Notes: generated by a model from the letters alone, not told the origin. A stretch of DNA of 64,000 nucleotides from Carpediemonas membranifera BICM (GCA_019828565.1 JAHDYR010000009.1:248001-312000); one strand, 5' to 3'. Counted from the first letter of the stretch, positions 6,028-49,200 are shown. Translations and numbers: made by a program.

Positions 6028-7075
6028 CCGATTGGGGCCGCTAGGTCCGTGCCCGATCGCTTTCAGCTTCGAATGGGACGGCATTTATTGAGCCTGAGAA
6101 CACAACCCCGGCGAGTATTACGTAAACATAGGTAGGCCGGCCGCTGTGCGAGTCGCGGGCGGCGCGTGGGACCTCGAATCGAATGTGCAGTTTAGCCGGA
6201 TCCAGAGCACCCAACGAAAATGTGTCCGCAAAGCCGCGCCAGCCGCCTCGCTCGGCCCACTCGCGTCGCCTCGCGCGCATTTCTGCGACTGTGTCGCGGA
6301 CCGATTTAACGAAGGTGTCGTCGTTCGAGTGATCCACGCCATTTTGAACGATGGAATAATTTTTTTCGAACAACACGTTCAAGCGCCCGCCGATGTCCAC
6401 AAAGTCGAAGACGAAGCACCTCGAAGCTATCCTGTTCTGGCAGGAACATGGGCCAAAGCACGTTCCCATCGAGACGAACCTGCAGCGCTACGTGCGCGAC
6501 ACTACGAAGGCAAACTTCGTCAGAAAGGTCGTTTTGCTCGTCCACGACGTCCAGGTTTCCTGCGGAAGGAAGCCTGCCACCGAGTGCTCGATGATCACCC
6601 CGGTTCCCCCGGCCACGACCGAGAACAAGGCGTTTGTCCTTTCCCCTGCGCCTCACACAGCCCCTCCCGCAACCACATTCAGATCGACATCAGCAACGTC
6701 GCCTACCAGATCCGCCGCAAGCACATCGCCTCGGCCTCCGACTTCTTCACCCAGTTTCTCTTCGAACTCGGGCTCTGCCCCCAGCTCATCGCCATGCGCG
6801 AGCTGACCGAGGATCTGGCGACCGAGTCTGTCGGCCGGCAGTGTCTGTGCAGCACGGTCTACCCAGAGGACGACCAGATGTGAGCGCGCCGCCGCTATTT
6901 TCCTTTCTAAACGATCTTTCGCCACAACGTGAATAAGCGAGTGCCCCAGAAGCAGTCCTCTTCTTCTGGCTGGGCCGGAATAGCCTGCATCAACTCGCGC
7001 GCAGTTTAGCCGTTGCGATGAGCGACTTCGAGGTGAAACAGACGGAATTGACGACCAGGCGTGTGATAGTTTACA
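6028..7075 (+). repeat. direct repeat copy 1 (about 1.04 kb; copy 2 at 17220-18267)
   Basis: By-eye identity between 6028-7067 and 17220-18259, then one mismatch and 7 more matching bases. Offset 11192 bp. Identical ORFs appear in the ORF track for both copies. Confidence 0.97.
6393..6883 (+). CDS. hypothetical protein (in repeat copy 1)
   Basis: join(6393..6631,6661..6883). A 29-nt intron gtttgt...ctcacacag joins two ORF-track frames. Confidence 0.65.
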
Positions 7076-16597: not shown

Positions 16598-17236
16598 ATG
16601 AATGTGCCTCTTGCACTAGCGATTGGATTTATAGTGCTAATAGGAGTGGAGCTAGCCATTTTCTTGGTCATGGCGGCGTCCTGCCAGGCCAGTCTTCTTG
16701 TTCTCGTCTCTCTGATCCTAGCGCGGAGGATATCGGCCCGGAAGGAGAAGCGTCGCGCAGCAAAGCATAATGCAATGAGCGCATCGCCGCCACCGTCAAT
16801 TCAAACCGGCCTGGTGATGGACGAGGTGCCGACGTTCGTCCAGCAGACCGTCCCGGCCAAAGCAGCCGCTTCCAGTCATGGAGACTCGTCCAGCGACGCC
16901 CTGCTCGACGCAGACGACTCGGACGCGCTGTGCTCAGCCTCATCATCTTCGGAGAACGACAGCCCGACGATCACGATCACCTACGACTCACATCCTTCTC
17001 CCGCGACGCCGCAAATAGATCCGCGGAACCTAGTTCCGCCGACGAGCATGCGCAAGCAGCCCGCCGGCAGACGGGCGAAGTCTCTGAAGACCGAGGCCAG
17101 GCCTGGGCCAGTTCGGACTTCGCCGCAGCGAGAGGCGCCGCCGGCCTCGCTGACGTCCCCAACGTCGCCGCCGGGTATGAATCTTGTGCGGCAGCAGTCG
17201 TTTGGGGGCTTCAACATCGCCGATTGGGGCCGCTAG
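16598..17236 (+). CDS. hypothetical protein with N-terminal transmembrane segments
   Basis: Hydrophobic N-terminus and S/P-rich tail; the stop codon lies inside repeat copy 2. Confidence 0.6.
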   Translation: MNVPLALAIGFIVLIGVELAIFLVMAASCQASLLVLVSLILARRISARKEKRRAAKHNAMSASPPPSIQTGLVMDEVPTFVQQTVPAKAAASSHGDSSSDALLDADDSDALCSASSSSENDSPTITITYDSHPSPATPQIDPRNLVPPTSMRKQPAGRRAKSLKTEARPGPVRTSPQREAPPASLTSPTSPPGMNLVRQQSFGGFNIADWGR

Positions 17237-18267
17237 GTCCGTGCCCGATCGCTTTCAGCTTCGAATGGGACGGCATTTATTGAGCCTGAGAACACAACCC
17301 CGGCGAGTATTACGTAAACATAGGTAGGCCGGCCGCTGTGCGAGTCGCGGGCGGCGCGTGGGACCTCGAATCGAATGTGCAGTTTAGCCGGATCCAGAGC
17401 ACCCAACGAAAATGTGTCCGCAAAGCCGCGCCAGCCGCCTCGCTCGGCCCACTCGCGTCGCCTCGCGCGCATTTCTGCGACTGTGTCGCGGACCGATTTA
17501 ACGAAGGTGTCGTCGTTCGAGTGATCCACGCCATTTTGAACGATGGAATAATTTTTTTCGAACAACACGTTCAAGCGCCCGCCGATGTCCACAAAGTCGA
17601 AGACGAAGCACCTCGAAGCTATCCTGTTCTGGCAGGAACATGGGCCAAAGCACGTTCCCATCGAGACGAACCTGCAGCGCTACGTGCGCGACACTACGAA
17701 GGCAAACTTCGTCAGAAAGGTCGTTTTGCTCGTCCACGACGTCCAGGTTTCCTGCGGAAGGAAGCCTGCCACCGAGTGCTCGATGATCACCCCGGTTCCC
17801 CCGGCCACGACCGAGAACAAGGCGTTTGTCCTTTCCCCTGCGCCTCACACAGCCCCTCCCGCAACCACATTCAGATCGACATCAGCAACGTCGCCTACCA
17901 GATCCGCCGCAAGCACATCGCCTCGGCCTCCGACTTCTTCACCCAGTTTCTCTTCGAACTCGGGCTCTGCCCCCAGCTCATCGCCATGCGCGAGCTGACC
18001 GAGGATCTGGCGACCGAGTCTGTCGGCCGGCAGTGTCTGTGCAGCACGGTCTACCCAGAGGACGACCAGATGTGAGCGCGCCGCCGCTATTTTCCTTTCT
18101 AAACGATCTTTCGCCACAACGTGAATAAGCGAGTGCCCCAGAAGCAGTCCTCTTCTTCTGGCTGGGCCGGAATAGCCTGCATCAACTCGCGCGCAGTTTA
18201 GCCGTTGCGATGAGCGACTTCGAGGTGAAACAGACGGAATTGACGACCAGGCGTGTGATTGTTTACA
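17220..18267 (+). repeat. direct repeat copy 2 (of 6028-7075)
   Basis: See copy 1. Ends inside a duplicated 5' fragment of the Ubl gene. Confidence 0.97.
17585..18075 (+). CDS. hypothetical protein (duplicate of 6393-6883)
   Basis: join(17585..17823,17853..18075); identical to copy 1. Confidence 0.65.
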
Positions 18268-18427: not shown

Positions 18428-18620
18428 TGTTGCGCAGGATAAACACATTGTTCGACCCTTCGATAGCACAAGCCTCTGTGCTGCGCAGGATTAGAATTGT
18501 TGAGTCCAAAACACACAGTGATCCGAGCAGCATCAGGATCGCAGTGTGGTTCATCATACTCTATCAATCGTGCGCTGCATATCACGCGCGCTGCAGCGCG
18601 TGCTTGCTCAACTTAGCAAG
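18428..18620 (-). ncRNA. candidate Fanzor omegaRNA scaffold, copy A
   Basis: Directly after the Fanzor stop. Hairpins cttgct-aagttg-agcaag, gatcc..ggatc and agcaca-gaggct-tgtgct. Ends in tcgaacaatgtgtttatcctgcgcaaca, shared with copy B. Confidence 0.7.
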
Positions 18621-19892
18621 TTAATGATAGCGAGGAAGAGCACCTCTCTGGGAGTCGTAGTGGAAAGGAGATTGCTCTATCTGATCTGAAGTTGCATCGA
18701 AGGTGCACCAAAGGATGTTCTCGCTGGCGCTCTTATCTCGGTGAGAGAGATTGAGAAGAATGACTCTCTGCTCGGGATGCCGACGTAGCCGTTCAACGCG
18801 CCATGGAGCTCCCTCGCACGCGGGATTCTGGCAGAGCATGGTGCGGTGTGTGTGCACCACGCGTCTGAAGTGTGCTTTGCAGTATGGGCACACGATGGAA
18901 GTGCGTAATTCGGAGACCATCGTGACACTCACGACGACGTTGTGCCGGAGCATGATGCCAGGGAGAGCTCGAGCAAAGTGGCGGTACGGTGCACAGGAGG
19001 GAGTGCCGGCGGAACCGAACAGTGCAGCCCCATACACGACTTCGAGATGAATGGGCTCCGGGGGGCGCCCCCCGAGATCATCAAGGAGTTGACGTCCAGC
19101 CCGGGCGAAGTGCTTCAGGCGCAGACAGTGATTGGCAAAAGTCGCACGGCGGAAACACTTTCTCGTCCCCTCGTTGATGATCTGAACGGTGTTCTCATGG
19201 ACAAACCTAATCGACTGTTTGAGAGCCTCTAGACTTGTCGTTTTGAACGATGCTGCGCTCATATTCATGCGGAAAGAGAGGGTGGCAGTGTAGCCACACT
19301 TAGCGAGTACGCCAGATACACTCTGCCCGTCTGGGCGGCGGATTGTGTAGCCGCCCAGCGACCGAGCACCAGGGTCGAAGCCCATGAGAGCTTGAATGTC
19401 CGGGGCAGGAGTAGCTTCGGCGTCATCCTGACCGAGCCGAGTCCGCTTGTTGCTGCTACCCTTTTTGTACGTGGGCCGGTCAGCCACCCGACCGCCACGG
19501 TATTTCTCGCGACCCACCCAAACCGTCACAGCAACAGAGACCCCGTCTGTCTTCACATAGAGCACTCTGCGGAGCTTGGTGATGTCGCCGTGATCACGCT
19601 CGTATTCAGCCACCTGCTCGTCGGTCAAATTCTTGGTTGCTGACCAATTCACGTGCACACGCAGGCGCCGCTTCATCGCTGGGGTGAGCGACATATAACC
19701 GTACTCGAGGGTCATGCTGGAGCGAGAACCAAGATCCCGCCCAGAACCGTCGCTCTTACCATCGCCGACGCCCTCATGTCCGCTACCCTTCTGGTGTACG
19801 ACAGGTGGGCCGTCAGACTGAACCTGTTCAGTCCTCTGGAGTTCATCCCAGGGGGGTCGACAGCTTAAGTCACCTTTACATGAATCCTCCAC
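18621..19892 (-). mobile_element. Fanzor1-like RuvC nuclease, 5'-truncated (homology begins near 19715)
   Basis: KTDGVSV; RuvC-I GFDPG; VVYG at the usual RuvC-II position; SELRTSIVCPYC; CQNPAC; RuvC-III HRDKSASENI. GTG start and no N-terminal REC-like part. Confidence 0.88.
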
Positions 19893-19950
19893 ATAAACAA
19901 AATCGCATTAACCTGCGATTTTTTGATTCTCCAAAGAAGAACAGTGTGAA

Positions 19951-27221: not shown

Positions 27222-27750
27222 AGCATCCTTGGTTGATTTATCGTGGAAATAAAGCGCATTAGGACCCATGTGCGGTGTGTGCTATCCTGCTCGGCGACAA
27301 AGTGAAGTCTGCTATAGACGATTGAGAGTTACTTTACTGCTTGCACTGTGCACTCTATGATACTTCATTACCTCTTCCCGCTCTCCCTTCCTTCTTCTTG
27401 AGAGTGATATTTCGATAGTCAGTCATCATCGTCGGGGGTCATCAATCAGTGCTTCTCCAGTCCTCTCGCCAAGCAACTAGCTTCCCACCTATCGTCTACC
27501 CCATCTTACTTCCATCCACTCTCTTCTGCTTGTCGTATTTCGGGGTCTTGATCATGACGTCTTTGCATCATCACCATGGCCTTCCATCGCACAGCGGGCT
27601 CTTCTATGCCGCTGCCTGAAGATAAAACACTTCAGTTCTTCTAATTCTCGCCATTATCACTGCATAGTCTCGTTCATTAAACGTCTGTCGTCTTTGATGT
27701 GTGTTGTTAACAAGTGATCGGTTCATTCACCGCAAAACGCAGAGCTTCAC

Positions 27751-29700
27751 ATGACCAGCATCTATACGGTCAAGTTCTCCATATCCTCCATTCTCCATAA
27801 CCGTAGAAACGTGATTCCTTTCATCGCGGACTTCTACGCCGGATTGGAGAACAGGCTCTGCTCGTTCACGAAGGCCAAGTTCTTTCATACTTGCCTTCTG
27901 TCATACATCGCCGCGTGTTGCCACCACGCCAATCTCTCCTTGCCCGTGCATGACCAGGCTCTGCACCAGGCCATCGTTATCGTCGCCTACCGGCGAAGTG
28001 GAGAGTACCGAAACCTCGCCGCCGACTCACTCGTCGACCGCTTCCTGGGCGCGAAAAAATACACCGCAGTTCGGCAGGTTGTCACCTCAATAGCCGAGAT
28101 GCCACTGTGGCATGACGAGTTCATCATCCGCCTCAGCACCGCCCTCAGGGCAGCTCGTCAACAGTGCCCTCGCGAGTTCGACGTGTGGCTGGGCGAATAT
28201 GCTACGAGCACCAAGCTGTGGCTCGTCAATGCCCTTGAAGGTTACTGCTGGCGCCTGGCGAAGATCATCACTCGGGTCGACACTGCCCTGACTCAGCGTG
28301 ACCCAGACGTGCCCCGGGATGACATCACCCGGTTGCGCACCGAACAACGCGCTGTCAAGGCGATCGTTGATGAGCACCTTGCAAAGATCTCAACTCCGGG
28401 ACGAGTCGACGAGGGCGTTCTACTCACGCTGCCCTGCGTCTGGCGGATCTCCGCGGCTCCGGGAGAGCTCACGGATATGGTTGCGGCATTCAACCCCGCC
28501 CATCCACCTCTTCCGGGTGATAAGCCGCTGGCTGGCCCCAAGCTTGTTCCGATGGCTCCGGTCCGCCCCGGGTTCATGCACGTTCCCTGTTCTCTCAACG
28601 TGCTGAACCCGGCTTGGCTTGCCCAACTTGGGGTCGACCCGGAGCATCACGCCACTGAGCGCATGACGCGAGAGCAGCTGGAGGCTCTTCCTCCGAACAT
28701 CCGTCGGGTGCTGTCTGTCAAGGCAGATGGGGTCGCCGTGGACCTCACGGTCCAAGTTGGTGCTCTGCCATACGTCAGAAGAAGTGCCAGTGGCAACCCG
28801 ACGATGAAGCGAAAGGCTCGGGAGCGTCTGGGTGTGGATGACGCGGATGCTCGCCCCGCGCCAGACCCCGATGCCCACCTCATGGGTTTCGACCCGGGCG
28901 CGAGGTCCATCGGAGGGTATTAAATCAGGCACCCCGATGGCACCACCAGCTCCGGCGTCCTTCCAAAGTGCGGATACACTAAGACGCCAAGTTTCGGCTT
29001 TGATATGACGGCCGCGTCGTTCAAGAGCACAAGACTAGTGAGTATCAACAACTCTATTAGGTTTGTGCTGGACAACGCGAACGACATTTTCGAGGCTGGA
29101 AAGCGTAAGTCTTTCCGCCGAGTGCGCTTTGCGAACCACATCCTTCGCCAGAAGCACTTCGCCCGCTGCGGCCAACAGTTGGCTCGGGAGTTCGGTTGGC
29201 TTCGCCACCATCCCATCGCCACCCCCATTCGCCTGAAAGTCTTCTACGGGAGCTCGGGATTCACCACGCCTGCTGGTATGTTCATTCCTTGCGCGCCATA
29301 TCGAAAGTTCGCGAGAGAGATAGTTTCCCTTCTCAAGGGGTATAACATTGTCGTCGATCTTAACATGGTTAACGAGGATCGCACCACCGTCGTCTGCCCT
29401 CACTGCCACGCCCCCTACAAGCGAGTTCGTCCGCGTGATGACCAGCACGTTCACCCACATCGTGTGATGCTCTGCGAAAATCCACAGTGCCGTGGTGCTC
29501 AGTGGCGCGCAACAGTTCCTGATGCTCTGAATGTTGATCATCGGGACAAGAGTGCTGCAGAGAACATCCTGTGGCGTTCTCTTGCCACGGAAGATGAGCT
29601 CAGTGGCTCTCCGTTCAGTCGCACATTGATCCCGCGCCTTCCAACATCATTCCAGTATCATCAATTGGCTAACCGCCAACATTCGTCTACGGACGGATGA
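27751..29700 (+). mobile_element. full-length Fanzor1-like nuclease (about 650 codons) interrupted by one in-frame TAA at 28921-28923
   Basis: ORFs 27751-28923 and 29005-29700 are in the same frame. KADGVAV, GFDPG, VFYG, NEDRTTVVCPHC, CENPQC, HRDKSAAENI. Colinear with the 18621-19892 protein. Confidence 0.9.
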
Positions 29701-29779
29701 TGTTGTACAGTTTGGCACTTTGATCGTTCCTTTCAGGCCCTGTCTGGAGGTTCGAACAATGTGTTTATACTGCGCAACA
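29662..29779 (+). ncRNA. candidate Fanzor omegaRNA scaffold, copy B
   Basis: Hairpins ttggc-taacc-gccaa, cattcgtc-TACG-gacggatg and tttcaggc-cct-gtctggag. Long-range stem 29701-29711/29769-29779. Shared 28-nt end motif at 29752-29779. Confidence 0.7.
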
Positions 29780-29792
29780 CACAAAGACATCA

Positions 29793-31214
29793 ATGATGGA
29801 TCGTCGCGATAGATTGGTCCAGAATGAAATGCTAGACGTCCTGTCAAGGATGTATGGCTCAGAGAATGACATTGCTCTGCTCCGAATCATCTTAGCTGAG
29901 CGTTTCAGCGCTCTTCCGGGTGTTCGTCGTGCTGACGTCGCTTTCAATCGCACAGAAGGTGAAAACGGAGCCACCATATCATACAATGCTGTTCCAAACC
30001 TCACCAACACAGATTGGCGGAACTTGCGGCTGTTTGTCGGTCTGACGAGCGGCAAGCCCATCGGAGAGATCAGTGGCGCCGTTCTGAACAAGCTCCCTGG
30101 ATTCATGCACGCTAAGGGGTCTAGTACGTGGAGCAAGCCTATCAGGGGGCCCACGACCACCAAATACTCTGCCTTCATCTCTGACATCGGCCTCTTCAAC
30201 TCTCTCCGAAACGCATGGACAGTTGGGACTGATAAGACGGATAGCGAGGAGGAGCAGGCGTCCCACAACCACGCATGTACCACAGCGTACGCGGAAGTGG
30301 TCCGTACGGGCCCTACTACTGGCATTTACGACATCCTCGCTGCCCCATCGACCTTCGCCATTGCCCCTCCCCGCCGCATGTTTACGAGCTGGTTTGGCGT
30401 CCTCCGTGCCTTTTGGTCAACCCGGGAGATATCCAAGGTCACGATCACTGCCTCTGAGGCGATCAAGTCCCTTGAACCCCGTGACAACAAGGCTGGCCTC
30501 GCCATGGGCTTATTCAAGAACAACATGAAGTTCTCCCACGGGCGGCCAGTCAAGGGGTTCCAGGCCTCAGCCTCAGCAGAGGCAGCAATGGTCAAGCCCA
30601 AGGCCCGGGCCCCACCGGTTCCCCAGGGTCGAGTCGAGGCGGCACTATCCCTGACCAACCCTCTTGGGCCATGGTCATGGGCCCCAGCGCTGACTACCGG
30701 TGTCTCCGCCGGTGTTCTCCGGGCCCGCTCATCTGACAGTGGAAGCAAGGATGCTTCTTTCCACGACCGGTTCCACTTGGGCGGAGGTGCTCTCCGCCAC
30801 TTCCAGGCGAAGAAGGTGGGACCATGCGAGCCCCGCAGCCCGATGTGCCCTGAGGCGCCGGTGTCTGTCGGCGTCGACTGGCTTGGCGGCGACACATACT
30901 GGAACAGTTATGTCGGGGCAAATGTGCCCATGCCCATCCACAGGCTGGCTGACATCCCAAAGGTCGGCCGTTTCCTCCAGGCGGCCCAGGGTCTGAAGGA
31001 TGTCATATTTGCTCATGTATACGGTAACGCCGGCGGGTTGACTCTCGGCAAGGATCCCAGGGCGCTGATCAAGGATATCCGCTGTTCAGTGGGGGCCGGG
31101 GTGCTGGTGAGGACCGGTGGTGGGCTGATGGAGATCGGGCTGGGCGTGCCCCTGTGCTTCCAGCCATTCGACGTCACGCAGGGCCTTGTGTTCGGGGTGG
31201 GGCTCGAGCTGTGA
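29793..31214 (+). CDS. SAM50: Sam50/Omp85 beta-barrel assembly protein
   Basis: DRFHLGG.ALRHF, LGGDTYW, IRCSVGAGVL, and a C-terminal beta-signal-like LVFGVGLEL. Confidence 0.8.
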   Translation: MMDRRDRLVQNEMLDVLSRMYGSENDIALLRIILAERFSALPGVRRADVAFNRTEGENGATISYNAVPNLTNTDWRNLRLFVGLTSGKPIGEISGAVLNKLPGFMHAKGSSTWSKPIRGPTTTKYSAFISDIGLFNSLRNAWTVGTDKTDSEEEQASHNHACTTAYAEVVRTGPTTGIYDILAAPSTFAIAPPRRMFTSWFGVLRAFWSTREISKVTITASEAIKSLEPRDNKAGLAMGLFKNNMKFSHGRPVKGFQASASAEAAMVKPKARAPPVPQGRVEAALSLTNPLGPWSWAPALTTGVSAGVLRARSSDSGSKDASFHDRFHLGGGALRHFQAKKVGPCEPRSPMCPEAPVSVGVDWLGGDTYWNSYVGANVPMPIHRLADIPKVGRFLQAAQGLKDVIFAHVYGNAGGLTLGKDPRALIKDIRCSVGAGVLVRTGGGLMEIGLGVPLCFQPFDVTQGLVFGVGLEL

Positions 31215-37422: not shown

Positions 37423-40400
37423 ATGCAACCACTTCTAGATTTCCCGAACGAAGTGAGCGTTGGCGATCCACAAAAAGCCAAAGACGACGCCTTATCGGCG
37501 TTTAACACAGAATCCCTCGACGCCTCGTCGTTCGAGGAGAGCCGCCAAGCTGAGCGCGACATGACGCTCTTGCGCACTCTCGCGGCTTCGTGGTTCATAA
37601 TTCGTCATGGATTATCACCTCTTGCGATCCTCCTAGCTTTCCTCTCATTGGTTAGTATCGCGGGCAACATCTTCGGGAACATCATGCGGAACCATGCGTT
37701 CACCGACCTCTCCTGCATATGCTTCGGCACATGCCAGCAACCGCACCACTGGAGCTACTACCTCGCCCGCCTTTTGGCCTGGGACGTCGTGAATATGGTC
37801 ACGAGCCTGTCAACTTTCTCGTGGCTTTGCGGTCGAGAAGTACGCGCCCGTCTCACGCGTCATTCCGTCAAGCAGTTCTACCACAAGGGCGTCCCATATC
37901 GCGTGCTCTCCTCCAACCGACGCATCGACAACGTGGACCAGCGTATCGCGGCCGACATCAAGTCCTTGTCCGCCCTGTTGTTCGGGTCACCCCATCTCGG
38001 CGTGGTTGGACTGCTCACAGAGAAGAACGGCCTCGTAAGCTCCATCGCCCAGGCCGTCGGCTTTGGATACGTCATCATGCAGGCCGAGGGCCTCCCAATC
38101 CTCCTCATCGTCCTGGTGTACTTCGCCGTAACCTCTGTGTTCGCCGTAGTAATAACGCTGCCGCTCTCCCGCCTCACGTACATGCAGGAGAAGCTCGAGG
38201 GCGACCTGCGTCGAGTCCATTCTCGAGTCCGGGAGTTTGCAGAGTCCATTGCCTTCTTCACACCCAGCCCGGCAAGGGAAAAGGACCTGGCCAACGCTAG
38301 TCTGAAAGCCGCGGTCCACAACCAGTCCAGGCTTGTCCGCTGGGGGCTCCCATTCGTCCTCTTCAAGCAGCTCCAGTCGTTTTTGTCCAGCATGCTCCCC
38401 ATCATCATCCTCTTCGCGAAGATGGCCCTGACCAACTGGAAGTGCCTCACATACTCTGAGATCCAGTTCTTCCAGGACACGCTGCCCCTGCTCCTTGTCG
38501 CTCTGTCCAGCCTCCAGGGGCTGCTTGAGCCCGTCGCCACGCTAAGGGGGCTCATGGGCAGGGTCCACACTATGGGAACAACCTCATACGTCGCACGGAG
38601 AGACGTGCGGGCATTGAAACCATCCACGGGCACTGCCGACGCTCTCCGGATGTCTGGAGTGACAGTGTGCACCCCCACCGGTCGGACCCTCATCTCCGGC
38701 CTCGACCTCGAGGTCACCCAGGGCAACTCGATCGTAGTCATGGGCCCCTCCGGGTCTGGCAAGAGCTCGCTGCTGAGGGTTATCGCCGGCCTCTGGCCGC
38801 CGACGAGTGGGAGCATCGAGAAGCCGGCGTCGACTTTCTTTTTGCCCCAGCGGCCCTACTTACCTGTCGGCACGCTCTTAGATCAGCTGACGTATCCGGA
38901 AAAGGGGAAGGGGAAAGATGCCAAGGAGCGGGCGGCGATGGCGCTTCAGCTGTGCGAGCTGGGTCATCTTCTTGAGGACCATCAGCTGGAAGACACTGAG
39001 CCCTGGGCTGACATGCTCTCAGGGGGCGAGCAGCAGCGCCTGGGCTTCGCGCGTCTCTTCTTCCACAACCCGCGCTGGGCCGTGATGGACGAGGCGACGT
39101 CCGCCCTCGACGGCCCCCTCGAGACGCGGCTGCTGACTGAGTGCACCCGCCGCGGCATCACCATGGTCAGCGTCGCACACCGCCCTTCTGTTGCAGAGCA
39201 CCACAAGCTTGTCCTCGAGCTAGACCAGTCTGGCTCCGTCGTCCGTCTCGAGCCTGTCAGCGAACGCTTCGCCCGTGACCCAATCCCCGAGCCCCCTATA
39301 CGTGAGATAATCCGCGAGTCGACCCAACCCGCAGGACCCTTGCCGCCGCTGAAGTCAAGCCTGTCCTGGCCTAACGTGGCCGGCCTGCTCCTCGCCCTGC
39401 TCCCACCCCTCTTCTCGCTTGACACCCTCCTCGTTGCCGTCATGCCTCTCTTCTACCTGGGCCGGAGCACCATCGCTGTGTTCGGCACCAGTCTCGCTGC
39501 CCACTCGGCGGCCATGATGGCTTGTGCGGATAAGCAGACGTACGCCAGTCCAGGTACTTCCCTCGCCTTCGCCAAGAGCATGGGGTCAAGCGTGGTCAAC
39601 GGAGTTAGTGTTGCTGCTCAGATGATCGCGCTGCTGGTGCTGGGCTACAGGACCCGAGGCAGACTCACCGCTCACTTCCACGGCAAGTACTTCAGCAGTA
39701 GCGTGTTCTACAACGTCCAGCGTAGCATTTCAGACGCTGATCAGAGAATCACGGCGGACACTGCAAACATGGCTGACGCCGTCTTCGGTTCCCTCGCACC
39801 ACCGGTCACGGCAATCGTCGACAACGCCATGATGCCCGGCCTCCTCGTAACATTCGCATTCGTTGCTCTCCGTGATGAGCTCTGGATCACTGTTATCCCG
39901 GCACTATGCGCGGTCGCTATGATCGGTGTTTTGATTATCTCCTCCATCCCCAGCGGGGCTGCCACACGCCGACTCGAGAAGGCGGAGGGAGAGCTCAGGT
40001 ACCAGCTCGCACACACCATCGAGCACGCAGAGAGCATTGCTTTCCACAGCGGCGAGAGCCGCGAACGTCTGCTCGCGATCCATCGTCTCGAGCGGGTTCT
40101 CAGGCGCGAGCTCCACCTCATACTGGCCGGGACCGTCTCCCAGTTCGGCGCGTTGTTCGGCAAGAAGGAGCTGGGGCACATGGGCGGTCTCGCGCCCGTC
40201 CCTGTTCTCAAGTATTTGAATTACTCATTTGAGGAAATTTATGCCATTACTCTCTTCACCGAGTTCATCGGCAAGAGCTCCCCCGGGATGATTCTCGACC
40301 TCGTCCAGCGCTTGGCACCCATTCTTGGCTCTTTCACTCGTCTCGCTGAGCTTTCCGGCAACATGAGTCCGACTCCCCCAGCCGTGGTCGAAAAGTCACA

Positions 40401-41082
40401 CCCGGCCGGGTACCAATCAATTGATGACGGTGAAGACAAGGGCAGGCTGGTCATCGAGGACGCCACGATCGCCACCCCCAGCGGGCTGGTACTCGCGTCA
40501 GACCTGAACCTGGTGCTCACCGCCGACAAGCCGCTGCTGATTGAAGGGCCGAGTGGCAGCGGGAAGACATCCATTCTCCGCACTTTAGCCGGGCTCTGGA
40601 AGCCCAGGTCAGGACGCATTGTTCTTCCCAGCGATGCTTCGTTCCTCCCACAGACCTCATACATTTTCCCAGGGTCGTTATCTGAACAAGTGGCTTATCC
40701 TGCGAAAGTTGACATGAAGGACGCGGAGCAGACGAAGACGCTGATCCAGGCCCTTGTGGACGCGGGTCTCGGCTTCCTGCTGGACAGCCACGACATTCAC
40801 TCAGTGGCGCCCTGGGCTGACATGCTCTCAGGGGGCGAGCAGCAGCGCCTGGGCTTCGCGCGTCTCTTCTTCCACAACCCGCGCTGGGCCGTGATGGACG
40901 AGGCGACGTCCGCCCTCGACGGCCCCCTCGAGACGCGGCTGCTGACTGAGTGCACCCGCCGCGGCATCACCATGGTCAGCGTCGCACACCGCCCTTCTGT
41001 TGCAGAGCACCACAAGGTCGCTCTTCAGCTGCGGCGGGACCATACCTTCGCCATCGCCGATATCCGCCCGGTCGAGCAGTAG
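37423..41082 (+). CDS. full-size (TMD-NBD)x2 ABCD-family transporter
   Basis: DNVDQRI and EAA-like EFAESIAF; two Walker A motifs (GPSGSGKS, GPSGSGKT); two LSGGEQQRL...MDEATSALD. Confidence 0.93.
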   Translation: MQPLLDFPNEVSVGDPQKAKDDALSAFNTESLDASSFEESRQAERDMTLLRTLAASWFIIRHGLSPLAILLAFLSLVSIAGNIFGNIMRNHAFTDLSCICFGTCQQPHHWSYYLARLLAWDVVNMVTSLSTFSWLCGREVRARLTRHSVKQFYHKGVPYRVLSSNRRIDNVDQRIAADIKSLSALLFGSPHLGVVGLLTEKNGLVSSIAQAVGFGYVIMQAEGLPILLIVLVYFAVTSVFAVVITLPLSRLTYMQEKLEGDLRRVHSRVREFAESIAFFTPSPAREKDLANASLKAAVHNQSRLVRWGLPFVLFKQLQSFLSSMLPIIILFAKMALTNWKCLTYSEIQFFQDTLPLLLVALSSLQGLLEPVATLRGLMGRVHTMGTTSYVARRDVRALKPSTGTADALRMSGVTVCTPTGRTLISGLDLEVTQGNSIVVMGPSGSGKSSLLRVIAGLWPPTSGSIEKPASTFFLPQRPYLPVGTLLDQLTYPEKGKGKDAKERAAMALQLCELGHLLEDHQLEDTEPWADMLSGGEQQRLGFARLFFHNPRWAVMDEATSALDGPLETRLLTECTRRGITMVSVAHRPSVAEHHKLVLELDQSGSVVRLEPVSERFARDPIPEPPIREIIRESTQPAGPLPPLKSSLSWPNVAGLLLALLPPLFSLDTLLVAVMPLFYLGRSTIAVFGTSLAAHSAAMMACADKQTYASPGTSLAFAKSMGSSVVNGVSVAAQMIALLVLGYRTRGRLTAHFHGKYFSSSVFYNVQRSISDADQRITADTANMADAVFGSLAPPVTAIVDNAMMPGLLVTFAFVALRDELWITVIPALCAVAMIGVLIISSIPSGAATRRLEKAEGELRYQLAHTIEHAESIAFHSGESRERLLAIHRLERVLRRELHLILAGTVSQFGALFGKKELGHMGGLAPVPVLKYLNYSFEEIYAITLFTEFIGKSSPGMILDLVQRLAPILGSFTRLAELSGNMSPTPPAVVEKSHPAGYQSIDDGEDKGRLVIEDATIATPSGLVLASDLNLVLTADKPLLIEGPSGSGKTSILRTLAGLWKPRSGRIVLPSDASFLPQTSYIFPGSLSEQVAYPAKVDMKDAEQTKTLIQALVDAGLGFLLDSHDIHSVAPWADMLSGGEQQRLGFARLFFHNPRWAVMDEATSALDGPLETRLLTECTRRGITMVSVAHRPSVAEHHKVALQLRRDHTFAIADIRPVEQ
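39000..39207 (+). repeat. 208-bp identical internal repeat (second copy 40809-41016)
   Basis: The signature/Walker B/H-loop DNA of the two NBDs matches by eye. Confidence 0.93.
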
Positions 41083-43258: not shown

Positions 43259-46200
43259 ATGAAGCCAGAAGCCACCACGGAGAGCATTGGTGGCGCATTA
43301 GAGAACAACAGAGCAGAAAGTGATAGAACAAGGTCTGAAATCGGCGATATACCCGCTAGCGTGCAGGATTCAACGATCCTACCTGATACCAACGCTACAG
43401 AGCAGGAAGAGAAGCAGAACCGCGCGCACGAGCTATTACAGAAGGCTACACATCATTCCCGCGCCGGCGATCATTCTCGTGCGAAAACCTTTGCTTTGAA
43501 GGCGATCGCTCTCCTTGAAGAGACAGATTTCCACGTCGAGCTCGCTGTAGCGCACCACAACCTCGCCGTGGAGCACGAGTTTCTCAAGGCGTACCATCAG
43601 GCAATAGACGAGTACGACAAGTGTGCCAGGATCCTCCACAAGCACACGGACGTCACCGACGACGTTCCCGCCCAGTTGCTGCAGGCAAGGAAGGATGCAA
43701 GAGCACTGCTGCTGTCCAAGATCACATACACAGGCCCAGCACGGCGAGCGAAGTCACCCGACCAGACACAGAAACCGTCGAGCTATGGCTTGAAGCGGAT
43801 GACCGTGCAGCACAAGGTGGTGAGGTCAGCAAAGGCCAGGCCTGGGTCAACTATCAAGCCGACTCGACCCAGCAGCGGGGGTAGGCCAAGACCACCGAGG
43901 ACCAAGCGCTCACTCACCCCGGTCCAGGGGTTCTTCGACTCGAACCCGACTCTGGCCCGTTTCCAGCTGTCGACCAAGCAGACGCCGACCCCGACTGGGC
44001 GGAAGTTTGCATTCCCACTGGCTAAGGGTAGCTCTTACGAGCCGCAGAAGGCGTTTGACGTTACCGTGCCGCTGAATGTGAGTTTGCCAAAAATTGATCG
44101 GACGCCGAAGAAAAGTACCGTCAGAAAGCCAGCTACAGCTGGAGCTAATGGACGAGCTGGCCGTGCGTTACCCAGCGTGCCTAGACGATCGAATGGAGAG
44201 CCCGATGAGAACTTCCCAACCCCCAAACCAGTGCTTATTGGGAGAAAGACTCCAATCAAAGTCAGGGCATGCTCGCCAGTCGTCAGAGACCGTCTTAAGG
44301 CCCAACACGAGAGAATAGAGGCCGAGCTCGAATACGGTGAAGAGGAGCCCCAAGATGATTTGACTGCGTCATTTGATAATTCCCCGAGACCACTCACCGC
44401 CTCCCCCGGCACTCCAGTACCGTTGACGAGCGATCGCCCAAGTTTGAAGGGGACGCCGGTTACTGATTCAGACGCTGATGACAAGTTCACATGGACGACC
44501 ACAATTAGTGATGTAAGGGAGGGAGCTGAGACTCCGGATAGACTCAACAGATTGCCGGAGATTGGAGAAGTGACATCGTCGGTCATTGAATCTGATTTCG
44601 AGACTGAGGACGAGTTTTCTGAAGGGATGAGGCAGACACCGCACTTTGAGGGGCAGTTTGAGCTCAACTTCGAGCGGGTAGCCGAGGGGTACGACCTGGG
44701 TGACGCCGACGAGAAGATCGAAGCTGACGCTGAGCAGGCCGACGCCGACGAGAAGATCGAGGCCGACTCCGACGAGAAGATCGAAGCTGACGCTGAGCAG
44801 GCCGACGCCGACGAGAAGATCGAAGCTGACGCTGAGCAGGCCGACGCCGACGAGAAGATCGAAGCTGACGCTGAGCAGGCCGACTCCGACGAGAAGATCG
44901 AAGCCGACGCCGACGAGAAGATCGAGGCCGACGCTGAGCAGGCCGACGCCGACGAGAAGATCGAAGCTGACGCTGAGCAGGCCGACGCCGACGAGAAGAT
45001 CGAGGCCGACTCCGACGAGAAGATCGAAGCTGACGCTGAGCAGGCCGACGCCGACGAGAAGATCGAGGCCGACGCTGAGCAGGCCGACTCCGATGAGAAG
45101 ATCGAAGCCGACTCCGACGAGAAGATCGAAGCTGACGCTGAGCAGGCCGACTCCGACGAGAAGATCGAAGCCGACTCCGACGAGAAGATCGAAGCTGACG
45201 CTGAGCAGGCCGACTCCGACGAGAAGATCGAAGCCGACTCCGACGAGAAGATCGAAGCTGACGCTGAGCAGGCCGACGCCGACGAGAAGATCGAGGCCGA
45301 CTCCGACGAGAAGATCGAAGCTGACGCTGAGCAGGCCGACTCCGACGAGAAGATCGAAGCTGACGCTGAGCAGGCCGACGCCGACGAGAAGATCGAAGCT
45401 GACGCTGAGCAGGCCGACGCCGACGAGAAGATCGAAGCCGACTCCGACGAGAAGATCGAAGCTGACGCTGAGCAGGCCGACTCCGACGAGAAGATCGAAG
45501 CTGACGCTGAGCAGGCCGACTCCGACGAGAAGATCGAAGCTGACGCTGAGCAGGCCGACTCCGACGAGAAGATCGAAGCCGACTCCGACGAGAAGATCGA
45601 AGCTGACGCTGAGCAGGCCGACTCCGACGAGAAGATCGAAGCCGACTCCGACGAGAAGATCGAAGCTGACGCTGAGCAGGCCGACTCCGACGAGAAGATC
45701 GAAGCTGACGCTGAGCAGGCCGACTCCGACGAGAAGATCGAGGCCGACTCCGACGAGAAGATCGAAGCTGACGCTGAGCAGGCCGACTCCGACGAGAAGA
45801 TCGAAGCCGACTCCGACGAGAAGATCGAGGCCGACGCTGAGCAGGCCGACTCCGACGAGAAGATCGAAGCCGACTCCGACGAGAAGATCGAAGCTGACGC
45901 TGAGCAGGCCGACGCCGACGAGAAGATCGAAGCCGACTCCGACGAGAAGATCGAAGCTGACGCTGAGCAGGCCGACGCCGACGAGAAGATCGAGGCCGAC
46001 GCTGAGCAGGCCGACTCCGATGAGAAGATCGAAGCCGACTCCGACGAGAAGATCGAAGCTGACGCTGAGCAGGCCGACTCCGACGAGAAGATCGAGGCCG
46101 ACTCGACGAGAAGATCGAAGCTGACGCTGAGCAGGCCGACGCCGACGAGAAGATCCGAAGCCGACTCCGACGAAGATCGAAGCTGACGCTGAGCAGGCCG

Positions 46201-49200
46201 ACGCCGACGAGAAGATCGAGGCCGACTCCGACGAGAAGATCGAAGCTGACGCTGAGCAGGCCGACGCCGACGAGAAGATCGAGGCCGACTCCGACGAGAA
46301 GATCGAAGCTGACGCTGAGCAGGCCGACGCCGACGAGAAGATCGAGGCCGACTCCGACGAGAAGATCGAAGCTGACGCTGAGCAGGCCGACGCCGACGAG
46401 AAGATCGAAGCCGACTCCGACGAGAAGATCGAAGCTGACGCTGAGCAGGCCGACTCCGACGAGAAGATCGAGGCCGACTCCGACGAGAAGATCGAAGCTG
46501 ACGCTGAGCAGGCCGACGCCGACGAGAAGATCGAAGCTGACGCAAAGATCGAAGCTGACGCTGAGCAGGCCGACGCCGACGAGAAGATCGAGGCCGACTC
46601 CGACGAGAAGATCGAAGCTGACGCTGAGCAGGCCGACGCCGACGAGAAGATCGAGGCCGACTCCGACGAGAAGATCGAAGCTGACGCTGAGCAGGCCGAC
46701 GCCGACGAGAAGATCGAAGCCGACTCCGACGAGAAGATCGAAGCTGACGCTGAGCAGGCCGACGCCGACGAGAAGATCGAGGCCGACGCTGAGCAGGCCG
46801 ACGCCGACGAGAAGATCGAAGCTGACGCTGAGCAGGCCGACGCCGACGAGAAGATCGAAGCTGACGCTGAGCAGGCCGACGCCGACGAGAAGATCGAGGC
46901 CGACGCTGAGCAGGCCGACGCCGACGAGAAGATCGAAGCTGACGCTGAGCAGGCCGACTCCGACGAGAAGATCGAAGCCGACTCCGACGAGAAGATCGAA
47001 GCTGACGCTGAGCAGGCCGACGCCGACGAGAAGATCGAGGCCGACTCCGACGAGAAGATCGAAGCTGACGCTGAGCAGGCCGACTCCGACGAGAAGATCG
47101 AGGCCGACTCCGACGAGAAGATCGAAGCTGACGCTGAGCAGGCCGACTCCGACGAGAAGATCGAAGCTGACGCTGAGCAGGCCGACTCCGACGAGAAGAT
47201 CGAAGCCGACTCCGACGAGAAGATCGAAGCTGACGCTGAGCAGGCCGACGCCGACGAGAAGATCGAGGCCGACGCTGAGCAGGCCGACGCCGACGAGAAG
47301 ATCGAAGCTGACGCTGAGCAGGCCGACTCCGACGAGAAGATCGAAGCCGACTCCGACGAGAAGATCGAAGCTGACGCTGAGCAGGCCGACGCCGACGAGA
47401 AGATCGAGGCCGACGCTGAGCAGGCCGACTCCGACGAGAAGATCGAAGCCGACTCCGACGAGAAGATCGAGGCCGACGCTGAGCAGGCCGACTCCGATGA
47501 GAAGATCGAGGCCGACTCCGACGAGAAGATCGAAGCTGACGCTGAGCAGGCCGACTCCGACGAGAAGATCGAAGCCGACTCCGACGAGAAGATCGAGGCC
47601 GACGCTGAGCAGGCCGACTCCGATGAGAAGATCGAAGCCGACTCCGACGAGAAGATCGAAGCTGACGCTGAGCAGGCCGACTCCGACGAGAAGATCGAAG
47701 CCGACTCCGACGAGAAGATCGAAGCTGACGCTGAGCAGGCCGACTCCGACGAGAAGATCGAAGCCGACTCCGACGAGAAGATCGAAGCTGACGCTGAGCA
47801 GGCCGACTCCGACGAGAAGATCGAAGCCGACTCCGACGAGAAGATCGAAGCTGACGCTGAGCAGGCCGACGCCGACGAGAAGATCGAAGCCGACTCCGAC
47901 GAGAAGATCGAAGCTGACGCTGAGCAGGCCGACTCCGACGAGAAGATCGAAGCCGACTCCGACGAGAAGATCGAAGCTGACGCTGAGCAGGCCGACTCCG
48001 ACGAGAAGATCGAAGCTGACGCTGAGCAGGCCGACGCCGACGAGAAGATCGAAGCTGACGCTGAGCAGGCCGACGCCGACGAGAAGATCGAGGCCGACGC
48101 TGAGCAGGCCGACGCCGACGAGAAGATCGAAGCTGACGCTGAGCAGGCCGACTCCGACGAGAAGATCGAAGCCGACTCCGACGAGAAGATCGAGGCCGAC
48201 GCTGAGCAGGCCGACTCCGACGAGAAGATCGAAGCCGACTCCGACGAGAAGATCGAAGCTGACGCTGAGCAGGCCGACTCCGACGAGAAGATCGAAGCTG
48301 ACGCTGAGCAGGCCGACGCCGACGAGAAGATCGAAGCTGACGCTGAGCAGGCCGACGCCGACGAGAAGATCGAGGCCGACTCCGACGAGAAGATCGAAGC
48401 TGACGCTGAGCAGGCCGACGCCGACGAGAAGATCGAGGCCGACGCTGAGCAGGCCGACTCCGACGAGAAGATCGAAGCCGACTCCGACGAGAAGATCGAG
48501 GCCGACGCTGAGCAGGCCGACTCCGACGAGAAGATCGAAGCCGACTCCGACGAGAAGATCGAAGCTGACGCTGAGCAGGCCGACGCCGACGAGAAGATCG
48601 AGGCCGACTCCGACGAGAAGATCGAAGCTGACGCTGAGCAGGCCGACTCCGACGAGAAGATCGAGGCCGACTCCGACGAGAAGATCGAAGCTGACGCTGA
48701 GCAGGCCGACGCCGACGAGAAGATCGAAGCCGACTCCGACGAGAAGATCGAAGCTGACGCTGAGCAGGCCGACTCCGACGAGAAGATCGAAGCCGACTCC
48801 GACGAGAAGATCGAAGCTGACGCTGAGCAGGCCGACTCCGACGAGAAGATCGAAGCCGACTCCGACGAGAAGATCGAAGCTGACGCTGAGCAGGCCGACT
48901 CCGACGAGAAGATCGAAGCCGACTCCGACGAGAAGATCGAAGCTGACGCTGAGCAGGCCGACGCCGATGAGAAGATCGAAGCCGACTCCGACGAGAAGAT
49001 CGAAGCTGACGCTGAGCAGGCCGACGCCGACGAGAAGATCGAGGCCGACGCTGAGCAGGCCGACTCCGACGAGAAGATCGAAGCCGACGCTGAGCAGCCC
49101 CTCCACCCACGCATCCTACAGGTGGACGGCAGCCCGACCCGCATCTACAGCGACCACATCACGAGCACCATCAAGCTCACCGCCGCAGTCGGCACCGCCA

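Follow-up and report, generated by a model that had tools for sequence, protein, structure and literature searches.

Predicted omegaRNA scaffolds at the retroelement-like 3' ends of Fanzor1 elements in Carpediemonas membranifera

A stretch of 64,000 nucleotides from the genome of Carpediemonas membranifera (the window) contains two copies of a nuclease-bearing element, one on the minus strand (copy A) and one on the plus strand (copy B). We regard it as probable, with a chance of roughly two in three, that the right end of copy B, as the 3' terminus of a Fanzor1 element, encodes an omegaRNA scaffold whose guide is taken from the flanking DNA, and that its terminal 28-30 bases are also a retroelement-like end. 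The scaffold would consist of two hairpins (SL1, SL2) and a long stem (SL3) at the 3' end of the element, with the guide read from the flank, and the resulting RNA would be loaded onto the Fanzor protein. Read on the opposite strand, the last 28-30 bases would provide a non-autonomous element with its U3-R-like end; Ty3/Gypsy-type machinery would mobilise this carrier by reverse transcription and an integrase. By integrating in the orientation of the host gene, 15-16 bp beyond a probable host core-promoter motif, the element may allow the host promoter to transcribe the Fanzor and a new guide together. An omegaRNA that crosses the right end and draws its guide from the flank had been proposed for both copies in a first-pass annotation; for copy B this is well supported, with the boundary, a predicted fold and a topology found in three families in its favour, while the boundary and the guide given for copy A had to be replaced. 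Element statistics below are drawn from 90 loci and from genome-wide pattern counts.

Copy B, the nuclease and the predicted scaffold fold

The following features of copy B are referred to below:

27751-29700 (+): chimeric Fanzor1 ORF of copy B, with an in-frame stop (TAA) at 28921-28923; RuvC D/E/D and zinc finger present
29665-29779 (+): predicted omegaRNA scaffold of family B (SL1 29665-29679, SL2 29680-29699, SL3 29701-29779), from a 24-copy alignment, folding and a topology test
29752-29779 (+): terminal direct repeat of family B (28-mer), the 3' arm of SL3 and, on the minus strand, a U3-R-like end; present at both ends of B elements
29780-29799 (+): predicted guide of copy B, from the unrelated flanks of 26 B right ends; Pfam Omp85

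As first described, the 28-mer at 29752-29779 recurs on the minus strand at 18455-18428 with an identity of 27/28, and the likeness stops at CAACA. The genome-wide collection of this motif that had been recommended yielded 228 matches in a pattern search, far beyond chance, against none for a reversed control. About two thirds of these matches are left ends or solo copies, and only ~73 genome-wide are right ends. Occurrence of the motif independently of Fanzor ORFs, with conserved sequence downstream, had been named in advance as grounds for abandoning the omegaRNA reading, and such sequence does follow the left-end copies; this refutes the 28-mer as an omegaRNA marker, but not the scaffold. 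The role of the 28-mer as direct terminal repeat in an LTR-like carrier had been overlooked. Right ends retain a paired TCGA, whereas left ends vary at this place and often read TCAA or TCCA. The boundary assigned to copy B at 29779 is real: 26 distinct B right ends are near-identical through the equivalent base and continue into unrelated flanks, and the ~73 genomic right ends likewise have unrelated flanks.

Judged by its sequence, the encoded protein is a Fanzor1 with a RuvC triad. The full-length family-A protein comprises 642 aa, and the triad (D392, E547 and D605 in L039) is found together with the zinc finger in families A, B and D, whose proteins are 45-55% identical to each other, and in both window copies. 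Family D is a third family found among the examined loci, with 44 right ends that end in the 30-nt repeat of the D left end. A profile search recovered Fanzor1-type proteins at E 2e-6 to 1e-3, most of them with Cas12f1-like_TNB above the cut-off; hhalign gave 99.2% and E 3e-19, the Atlas score for Fanzor1 identity was 0.97, and one hit links to SpuFz1 (8GKH). Pfam applied to pieces of the ORF returned only a sub-threshold TNB match, a word-based homolog search only Carpediemonas copies, and AlphaFold run from the single sequence, with no alignment, a pLDDT of 36.8. The family-A Fanzor cluster (P0001) carries a cytosine deaminase label in NCBI/UniRef, apparently a misannotation, and our literature search found no paper naming both Fanzor and Carpediemonas.

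The pN/pS of the Fanzor genes is ~0.6, or 0.4-0.5 for shared changes, and most copies are broken. This includes both window copies: A is 5'-truncated, and B is a chimera with an in-frame stop, its 5' part belonging with a family-D-type left end and its family-B 3' part beginning at ~28843. Other copies have open frames, and each of the three stop codons is found among the broken ones, for which reason an alternative genetic code for this TAA was set aside. A further chimera, L059, joins a D-type left end and 5' ORF to an A 3' end, just as window copy B joins D to B, and these two chimeras indicate that the families recombine.

Two features of copy A enter the comparison of folds:

18621-19716 (-): 5'-truncated family-A Fanzor1 ORF; RuvC triad and zinc finger retained
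18477-18620 (-): predicted omegaRNA scaffold of family A (SL1 18620-18603, SL2 18602-18583, SL3 18579-18479)

Known Fanzor1 omegaRNAs lie in the interval from stop codon to right end, extend 14-15 nt into the flank and contain 2-4 stem loops (PMC10432273, PMC11423790). In copy B, 29665-29779 folds as two abutting hairpins followed by a stem of 79 nt, closed at the final base (terminal CA), and the 12 final codons of the Fanzor ORF (stop codon 29698-29700) lie within this predicted scaffold. The hairpins noticed at first inspection (29665-29679 and 29680-29699 in B, 18620-18603 and 18602-18583 in A) are present in the MFE folds. The suggested pairing of 29701-29711 with 29769-29779 also exists, with one G-U pair and one A.C mismatch in the window copy, and the closing stem reaches its full 11 bp in 15 of the 24 aligned copies. 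The B fold has a z of -7.25 in the Fanzor sense against -2.36 in antisense. Folded to its true end, A has the same topology as B (z -2.6 in the window copy, -3.9 in L034), which is lost when A is cut at 18428; its antisense strand folds as well or better (z -4.3 against -2.6 in the window copy). Family D shows this topology in its last 90 nt, although weakly and in a manner that varies with the length folded.

Common to A, B and D is the succession of hairpin, hairpin and long stem closing at the terminus, formed by differing sequences; by a rule that was defined after the folds had been seen, the topology occurs in 3 of 400 random windows (under 1%) and in none of 22 left or solo ends of family B. 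SL1 contains GCUAA in all three families. Between A and B both sides have changed at five of the eight SL2 pairs, and the stems differ two-sidedly between families. A covariance model built from B only retrieves SL1-SL2 of family A as its top non-B match, which is weak (E 0.11-0.18). Compensatory changes within family A were not found, the family-B copies are with 98% identity too uniform for covariation, and Rfam gave no match to the scaffold region.

It appears improbable that the fold is only a signal of the carrier, acting in packaging or strand transfer or, on antisense RNA or DNA, as inverted LTR termini, and that the Fanzor is a decaying passenger lacking a working guide. SL3 does span TG..CA as an LTR does, its 5' arm in family D is the start of the left end, family A folds well in antisense, most copies are broken and there is no TAM; however, the G-U pairs of B favour the Fanzor-sense strand (the z values of -7.25 and -2.36 given above), three families have SL1 and SL2 where omegaRNAs canonically lie and not within the repeat, proteins of 45-55% identity have all retained the catalytic triad, and pN/pS is below 1.

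The LTR-like carrier and its insertion sites

The carrier is described with the help of four further features:

27303-27400 (+): family-D left end of 65 bp, TG..CA (27303-27367), then an antisense polypurine tract; 30-nt repeat as in 44 D right ends
29763-29773 (-): copy of the promoter-like motif inside the 28-mer, antisense; weight-matrix match, with an apparent RNA 5' end at ~29760-29762
19906-19916 (-): weight-matrix match, upstream of the A left junction, to the host promoter-like motif
19715-19898 (+): non-LTR element with restriction-like endonuclease, 5'-truncated copy (3' end), targeting family-A left ends

The terminal 28-30 nt of A, B and D are found again, in direct orientation, at the left end, where an antisense purine tract follows them. 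The termini of the elements are TG..CA, and the duplication measures 5 bp in 14 of the 17 elements with a normal left end and 6-7 bp in the rest. In copy B the duplication is not clear-cut: the left-hand CAAAG is found again two bases beyond 29779. A 22-bp TG..CA stretch (27278-27299) directly left of the D end resembles a B left start fused to an A right end. A 4.55-kb Ty3/Gypsy element with a Gag knuckle, an integrase and a chromodomain has a 92-bp LTR that coincides at one end with the first 32 nt of the B left end; the middle 1.5 kb of the element, where the reverse transcriptase is expected, lies outside the sequence read. This element is represented at L066/L067, L069-L072 and L077/L078, and about a dozen full LTR pairs of it, two of them in tandem, were counted. 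Such an autonomous partner with shared ends was recognised for family B only, and no helper for A or D was found among the loci examined. Inspection of the Fanzor elements and the Gypsy helper revealed no TGG-type tRNA primer-binding site. First-strand transfer between different RNAs is known (PMC6894440), and B might borrow primer DNA from the Gypsy helper.

In contrast to canonical LTRs, only 4 of 16 A elements have left and right repeats of identical sequence. The carrier behaves like a non-autonomous Gypsy derivative, but is not classed as one because a complete, identical LTR pair is lacking: only ~30 nt are common to both ends. As a standard of comparison we used non-autonomous Ty3/Gypsy derivatives (TRIM-like elements). 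The carrier shares with these and with the resident Gypsy the TG..CA termini, 5-bp duplications, purine tract, solo repeats and a fixed promoter distance, and differs from the TRIM-like derivatives in its partial repeats (the right end is without the U5-like part), its often non-identical ends, the absence of a visible tRNA primer site and its cargo, an antisense RNA-guided nuclease.

Insertions are situated 15-16 bp downstream of a host promoter-like motif: a GCAGTTTAAGG-like motif occurs in 38 of 47 left flanks, mostly 21 (B) or 20 (A) bases upstream. In the window, 23 sites of this GCA(G/C)TTTA(A/T)G(G/C)-like motif (e.g. 26110 +, 56252 +, 7001 +) compare with 1-4 in shuffled sequence, and 11 of the 23 precede an ATG ORF (random 31%), often 17-80 nt before the start codon. 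Given this tenfold excess over shuffles and the position before ATG ORFs, the motif is a candidate for, and probably is, a core promoter element of Carpediemonas. Half of the A right ends have an ORF of at least 100 aa within 60 nt downstream.

The same motif lies in antisense inside the repeats of both A and B. A cDNA adaptor in the orientation of a minus-strand RNA start terminates two contigs (two runs, one sample) at 29759-29762, and in another contig it stands just upstream of a D left end, on the plus strand; its sequence has been published as a 5' RNA adaptor (PMC3025573). These expression data are assembled contigs from one study and one sample, and the RNA origin of the runs is presumed. 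Owing to the antisense motif inside the repeat and the apparent, adaptor-marked antisense RNA start, the 28-mer is interpreted as a minus-strand U3-R; the observations behind this role comprise direct repeats, TG..CA, 5-bp duplications, the purine tract, 32 bases of a Gypsy LTR, the motif and the apparent antisense start. Loose contig ends at 27785, seen in three runs, join the D-type left part to another TG-starting end, possibly a fourth end type.

It is quite improbable that a real omegaRNA sits on a carrier that transposes as DNA. A Ginger-like, integrase-related DDE transposase would then act on the TG..CA ends, and the nuclease would serve restorative homing after excision. Left and right ends are indeed not homogenised, two insertions (L039 and L043) have one common left junction, and no primer-binding site was seen. 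Yet the terminal repeats are direct and not inverted, three families have the antisense purine tract, solo repeats occur with duplications, one end is shared with the LTR of a chromodomain Gypsy, an apparent antisense start lies inside the repeat, and no such transposase was seen in the window or the loci. Helitron and IS607-type carriers are ruled out by the 5-bp duplications and direct repeats.

A variable piece in the A left ends was considered as strong-stop DNA of a helper and proved to encode the C-terminus of a restriction-like-endonuclease non-LTR element. This element, mostly 5'-truncated, inserts at TTTAGA in family-A left ends, of which 43 are interrupted and 5 intact genome-wide. 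Other copies lie at L032:550-1030 and L078:1599-3023 (-), and a related piece is found just inside some B elements (L014, L016, L079).

Corrected end of copy A, guides and the role of the nuclease

Two features follow from the comparison of family-A copies:

18428-18470 (-): solo 43-bp family-B terminal repeat, matching B left ends and solos elsewhere
18457-18476 (-): corrected predicted guide of copy A, a 6-bp spacer and the start of the solo B repeat

The 28-mer had been taken for the common 3' end of both nucleases. For copy A this does not hold: the match between the window and other family-A copies ends at 18477 +/-3 or earlier, the 28-mer is absent from the corresponding place in all copies compared, and the true family-A end is 18477. 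Positions 18470-18428 form a solo family-B terminal repeat that stands 6 bp past this end, outside element A, and has two substitutions and no clean duplication; elsewhere several solo B repeats possess 5-bp duplications, and their sequence is that of B left ends. That the 28-mer adjoins the A end in the window is explained by stacked elements, which are also seen elsewhere at shared sites with a spacing of a few bases (L029, L042, L056, L074 and L088). Since A ends at 18477 and the 28-mer is a solo B repeat, the guide originally given for copy A is wrong, and 18476-18457 takes its place. A common scaffold end of both copies at the 28-mer, with an A guide from 18427 (or two A guides), is practically untenable: although the 28-mer stands 49 bp past the A end in the window, its lack in other A copies already refutes this version, folding A out to 18428 destroys the terminal stem (z -0.84), and the stacking seen at those five loci offers a ready explanation.

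The guide predicted for copy B can be kept, since the boundary at 29779 holds; it covers the 5' leader and the start codon (29793) of an Omp85/Sam50-like host gene. Predicted guides are often such host 5' leaders, because insertions fall 15-16 bp past the host promoter-like motif. No fixed TAM was detected next to the left end, where positions -10 to -1 hold at most 0.22 bits (B) and 0.45 bits (A); the conserved flank motif occupies -21 to -11 and is not beside the guide start. With none adjacent, the TAM is predicted to be relaxed or displaced, which would be useful for editing if the enzyme is active.

The only possible matches of a guide are its own insertion site in the empty state and repeats of that flank. 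Matches of guides to other loci showed no excess over chance in the DNA examined, nested insertions and own-locus duplications aside. The 28-mer as a fixed guide against the helper LTR was discarded, as the A repeat has no such match in the DNA examined. Four copies that lack a normal left junction have at this place duplications of their own guide, 11, 12, 17-18 and 19 nt long (L054:1476-1493, L033 left junction, L008:256-274, L087:264-275), two of the four at the promoter-anchored position. Fanzor1 cuts 14-21 nt into its target. The duplications are suggestive of aborted homing into an empty sister site, but also fit one-ended integration or templated repair.

Given a real omegaRNA, the most likely role of the nuclease, at slightly less than even odds, is homing, in which it would cut the empty sister chromatid or allele and repair would copy the element in; this role needs a relaxed or displaced TAM. 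The fuller proposal, active RNA-guided homing on a retroelement chassis, with integrase placing the element shortly beyond a host core promoter, the guide made from this promoter at once and the empty site cut without an adjacent TAM or with a displaced one, is unlikely. On that proposal the promoter motif 15-16 bp upstream could be the displaced TAM, and the same 28 nt would combine three functions, those of a scaffold arm, an antisense promoter and an integrase end.

Comparison with known systems and further features of the window

At the sequence level the element shows the features expected of a Fanzor1 omegaRNA, with the exception of the TAM. Like the Fanzor1 systems SpuFz1 (Spizellomyces punctatus), GtFz1 and PpFz1 (PMC10432273, PMC11423790), it has a single ORF of ~640 aa with RuvC triad and zinc finger, a structured (here predicted) scaffold between ORF end and right end, a variable flank as guide, and many copies with internally deleted derivatives; the overlap of the scaffold with the last ORF codons recalls GtFz1. 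In contrast to these systems, the terminal repeats are direct rather than inverted, no fixed motif adjoins the left end (CATA in SpuFz1, TTAA in GtFz1), SL1 has 5-6 pairs instead of 7, and the scaffold end doubles as a predicted antisense promoter. With the homing of IS605/IS607 TnpB (PMC13565253) it has in common the right-flank guide and the empty site as predicted target; those elements, however, excise and their TAM is the insertion motif, whereas the present carrier looks copy-and-paste.

According to a 2026 review, no retrotransposon-encoded Fanzor is known, and a copy-and-paste carrier has neither evidence nor expected benefit (PMC13565253). Three scaffold families on LTR-like carriers, with well over 150 right-end copies, make this question directly testable, and three divergent scaffolds of one topology provide exact RNA boundaries for expression tests. 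New here are the corrected A boundary, the three-family fold, the apparent dual use of the terminal repeat, the long guide duplications and the non-LTR parasite of A left ends.

Among other features of the window, 6028-7075 and 17220-18267 form a direct duplication of 1048 bp with 99.9% identity, which ends 160 bp from the solo repeat. A long A-rich tandem-repeat region at 44702-49100 contains minus-strand ORFs of more than 1400 codons, and a perfect 208-bp repeat (39000-39207 and 40809-41016) lies within one long ORF.
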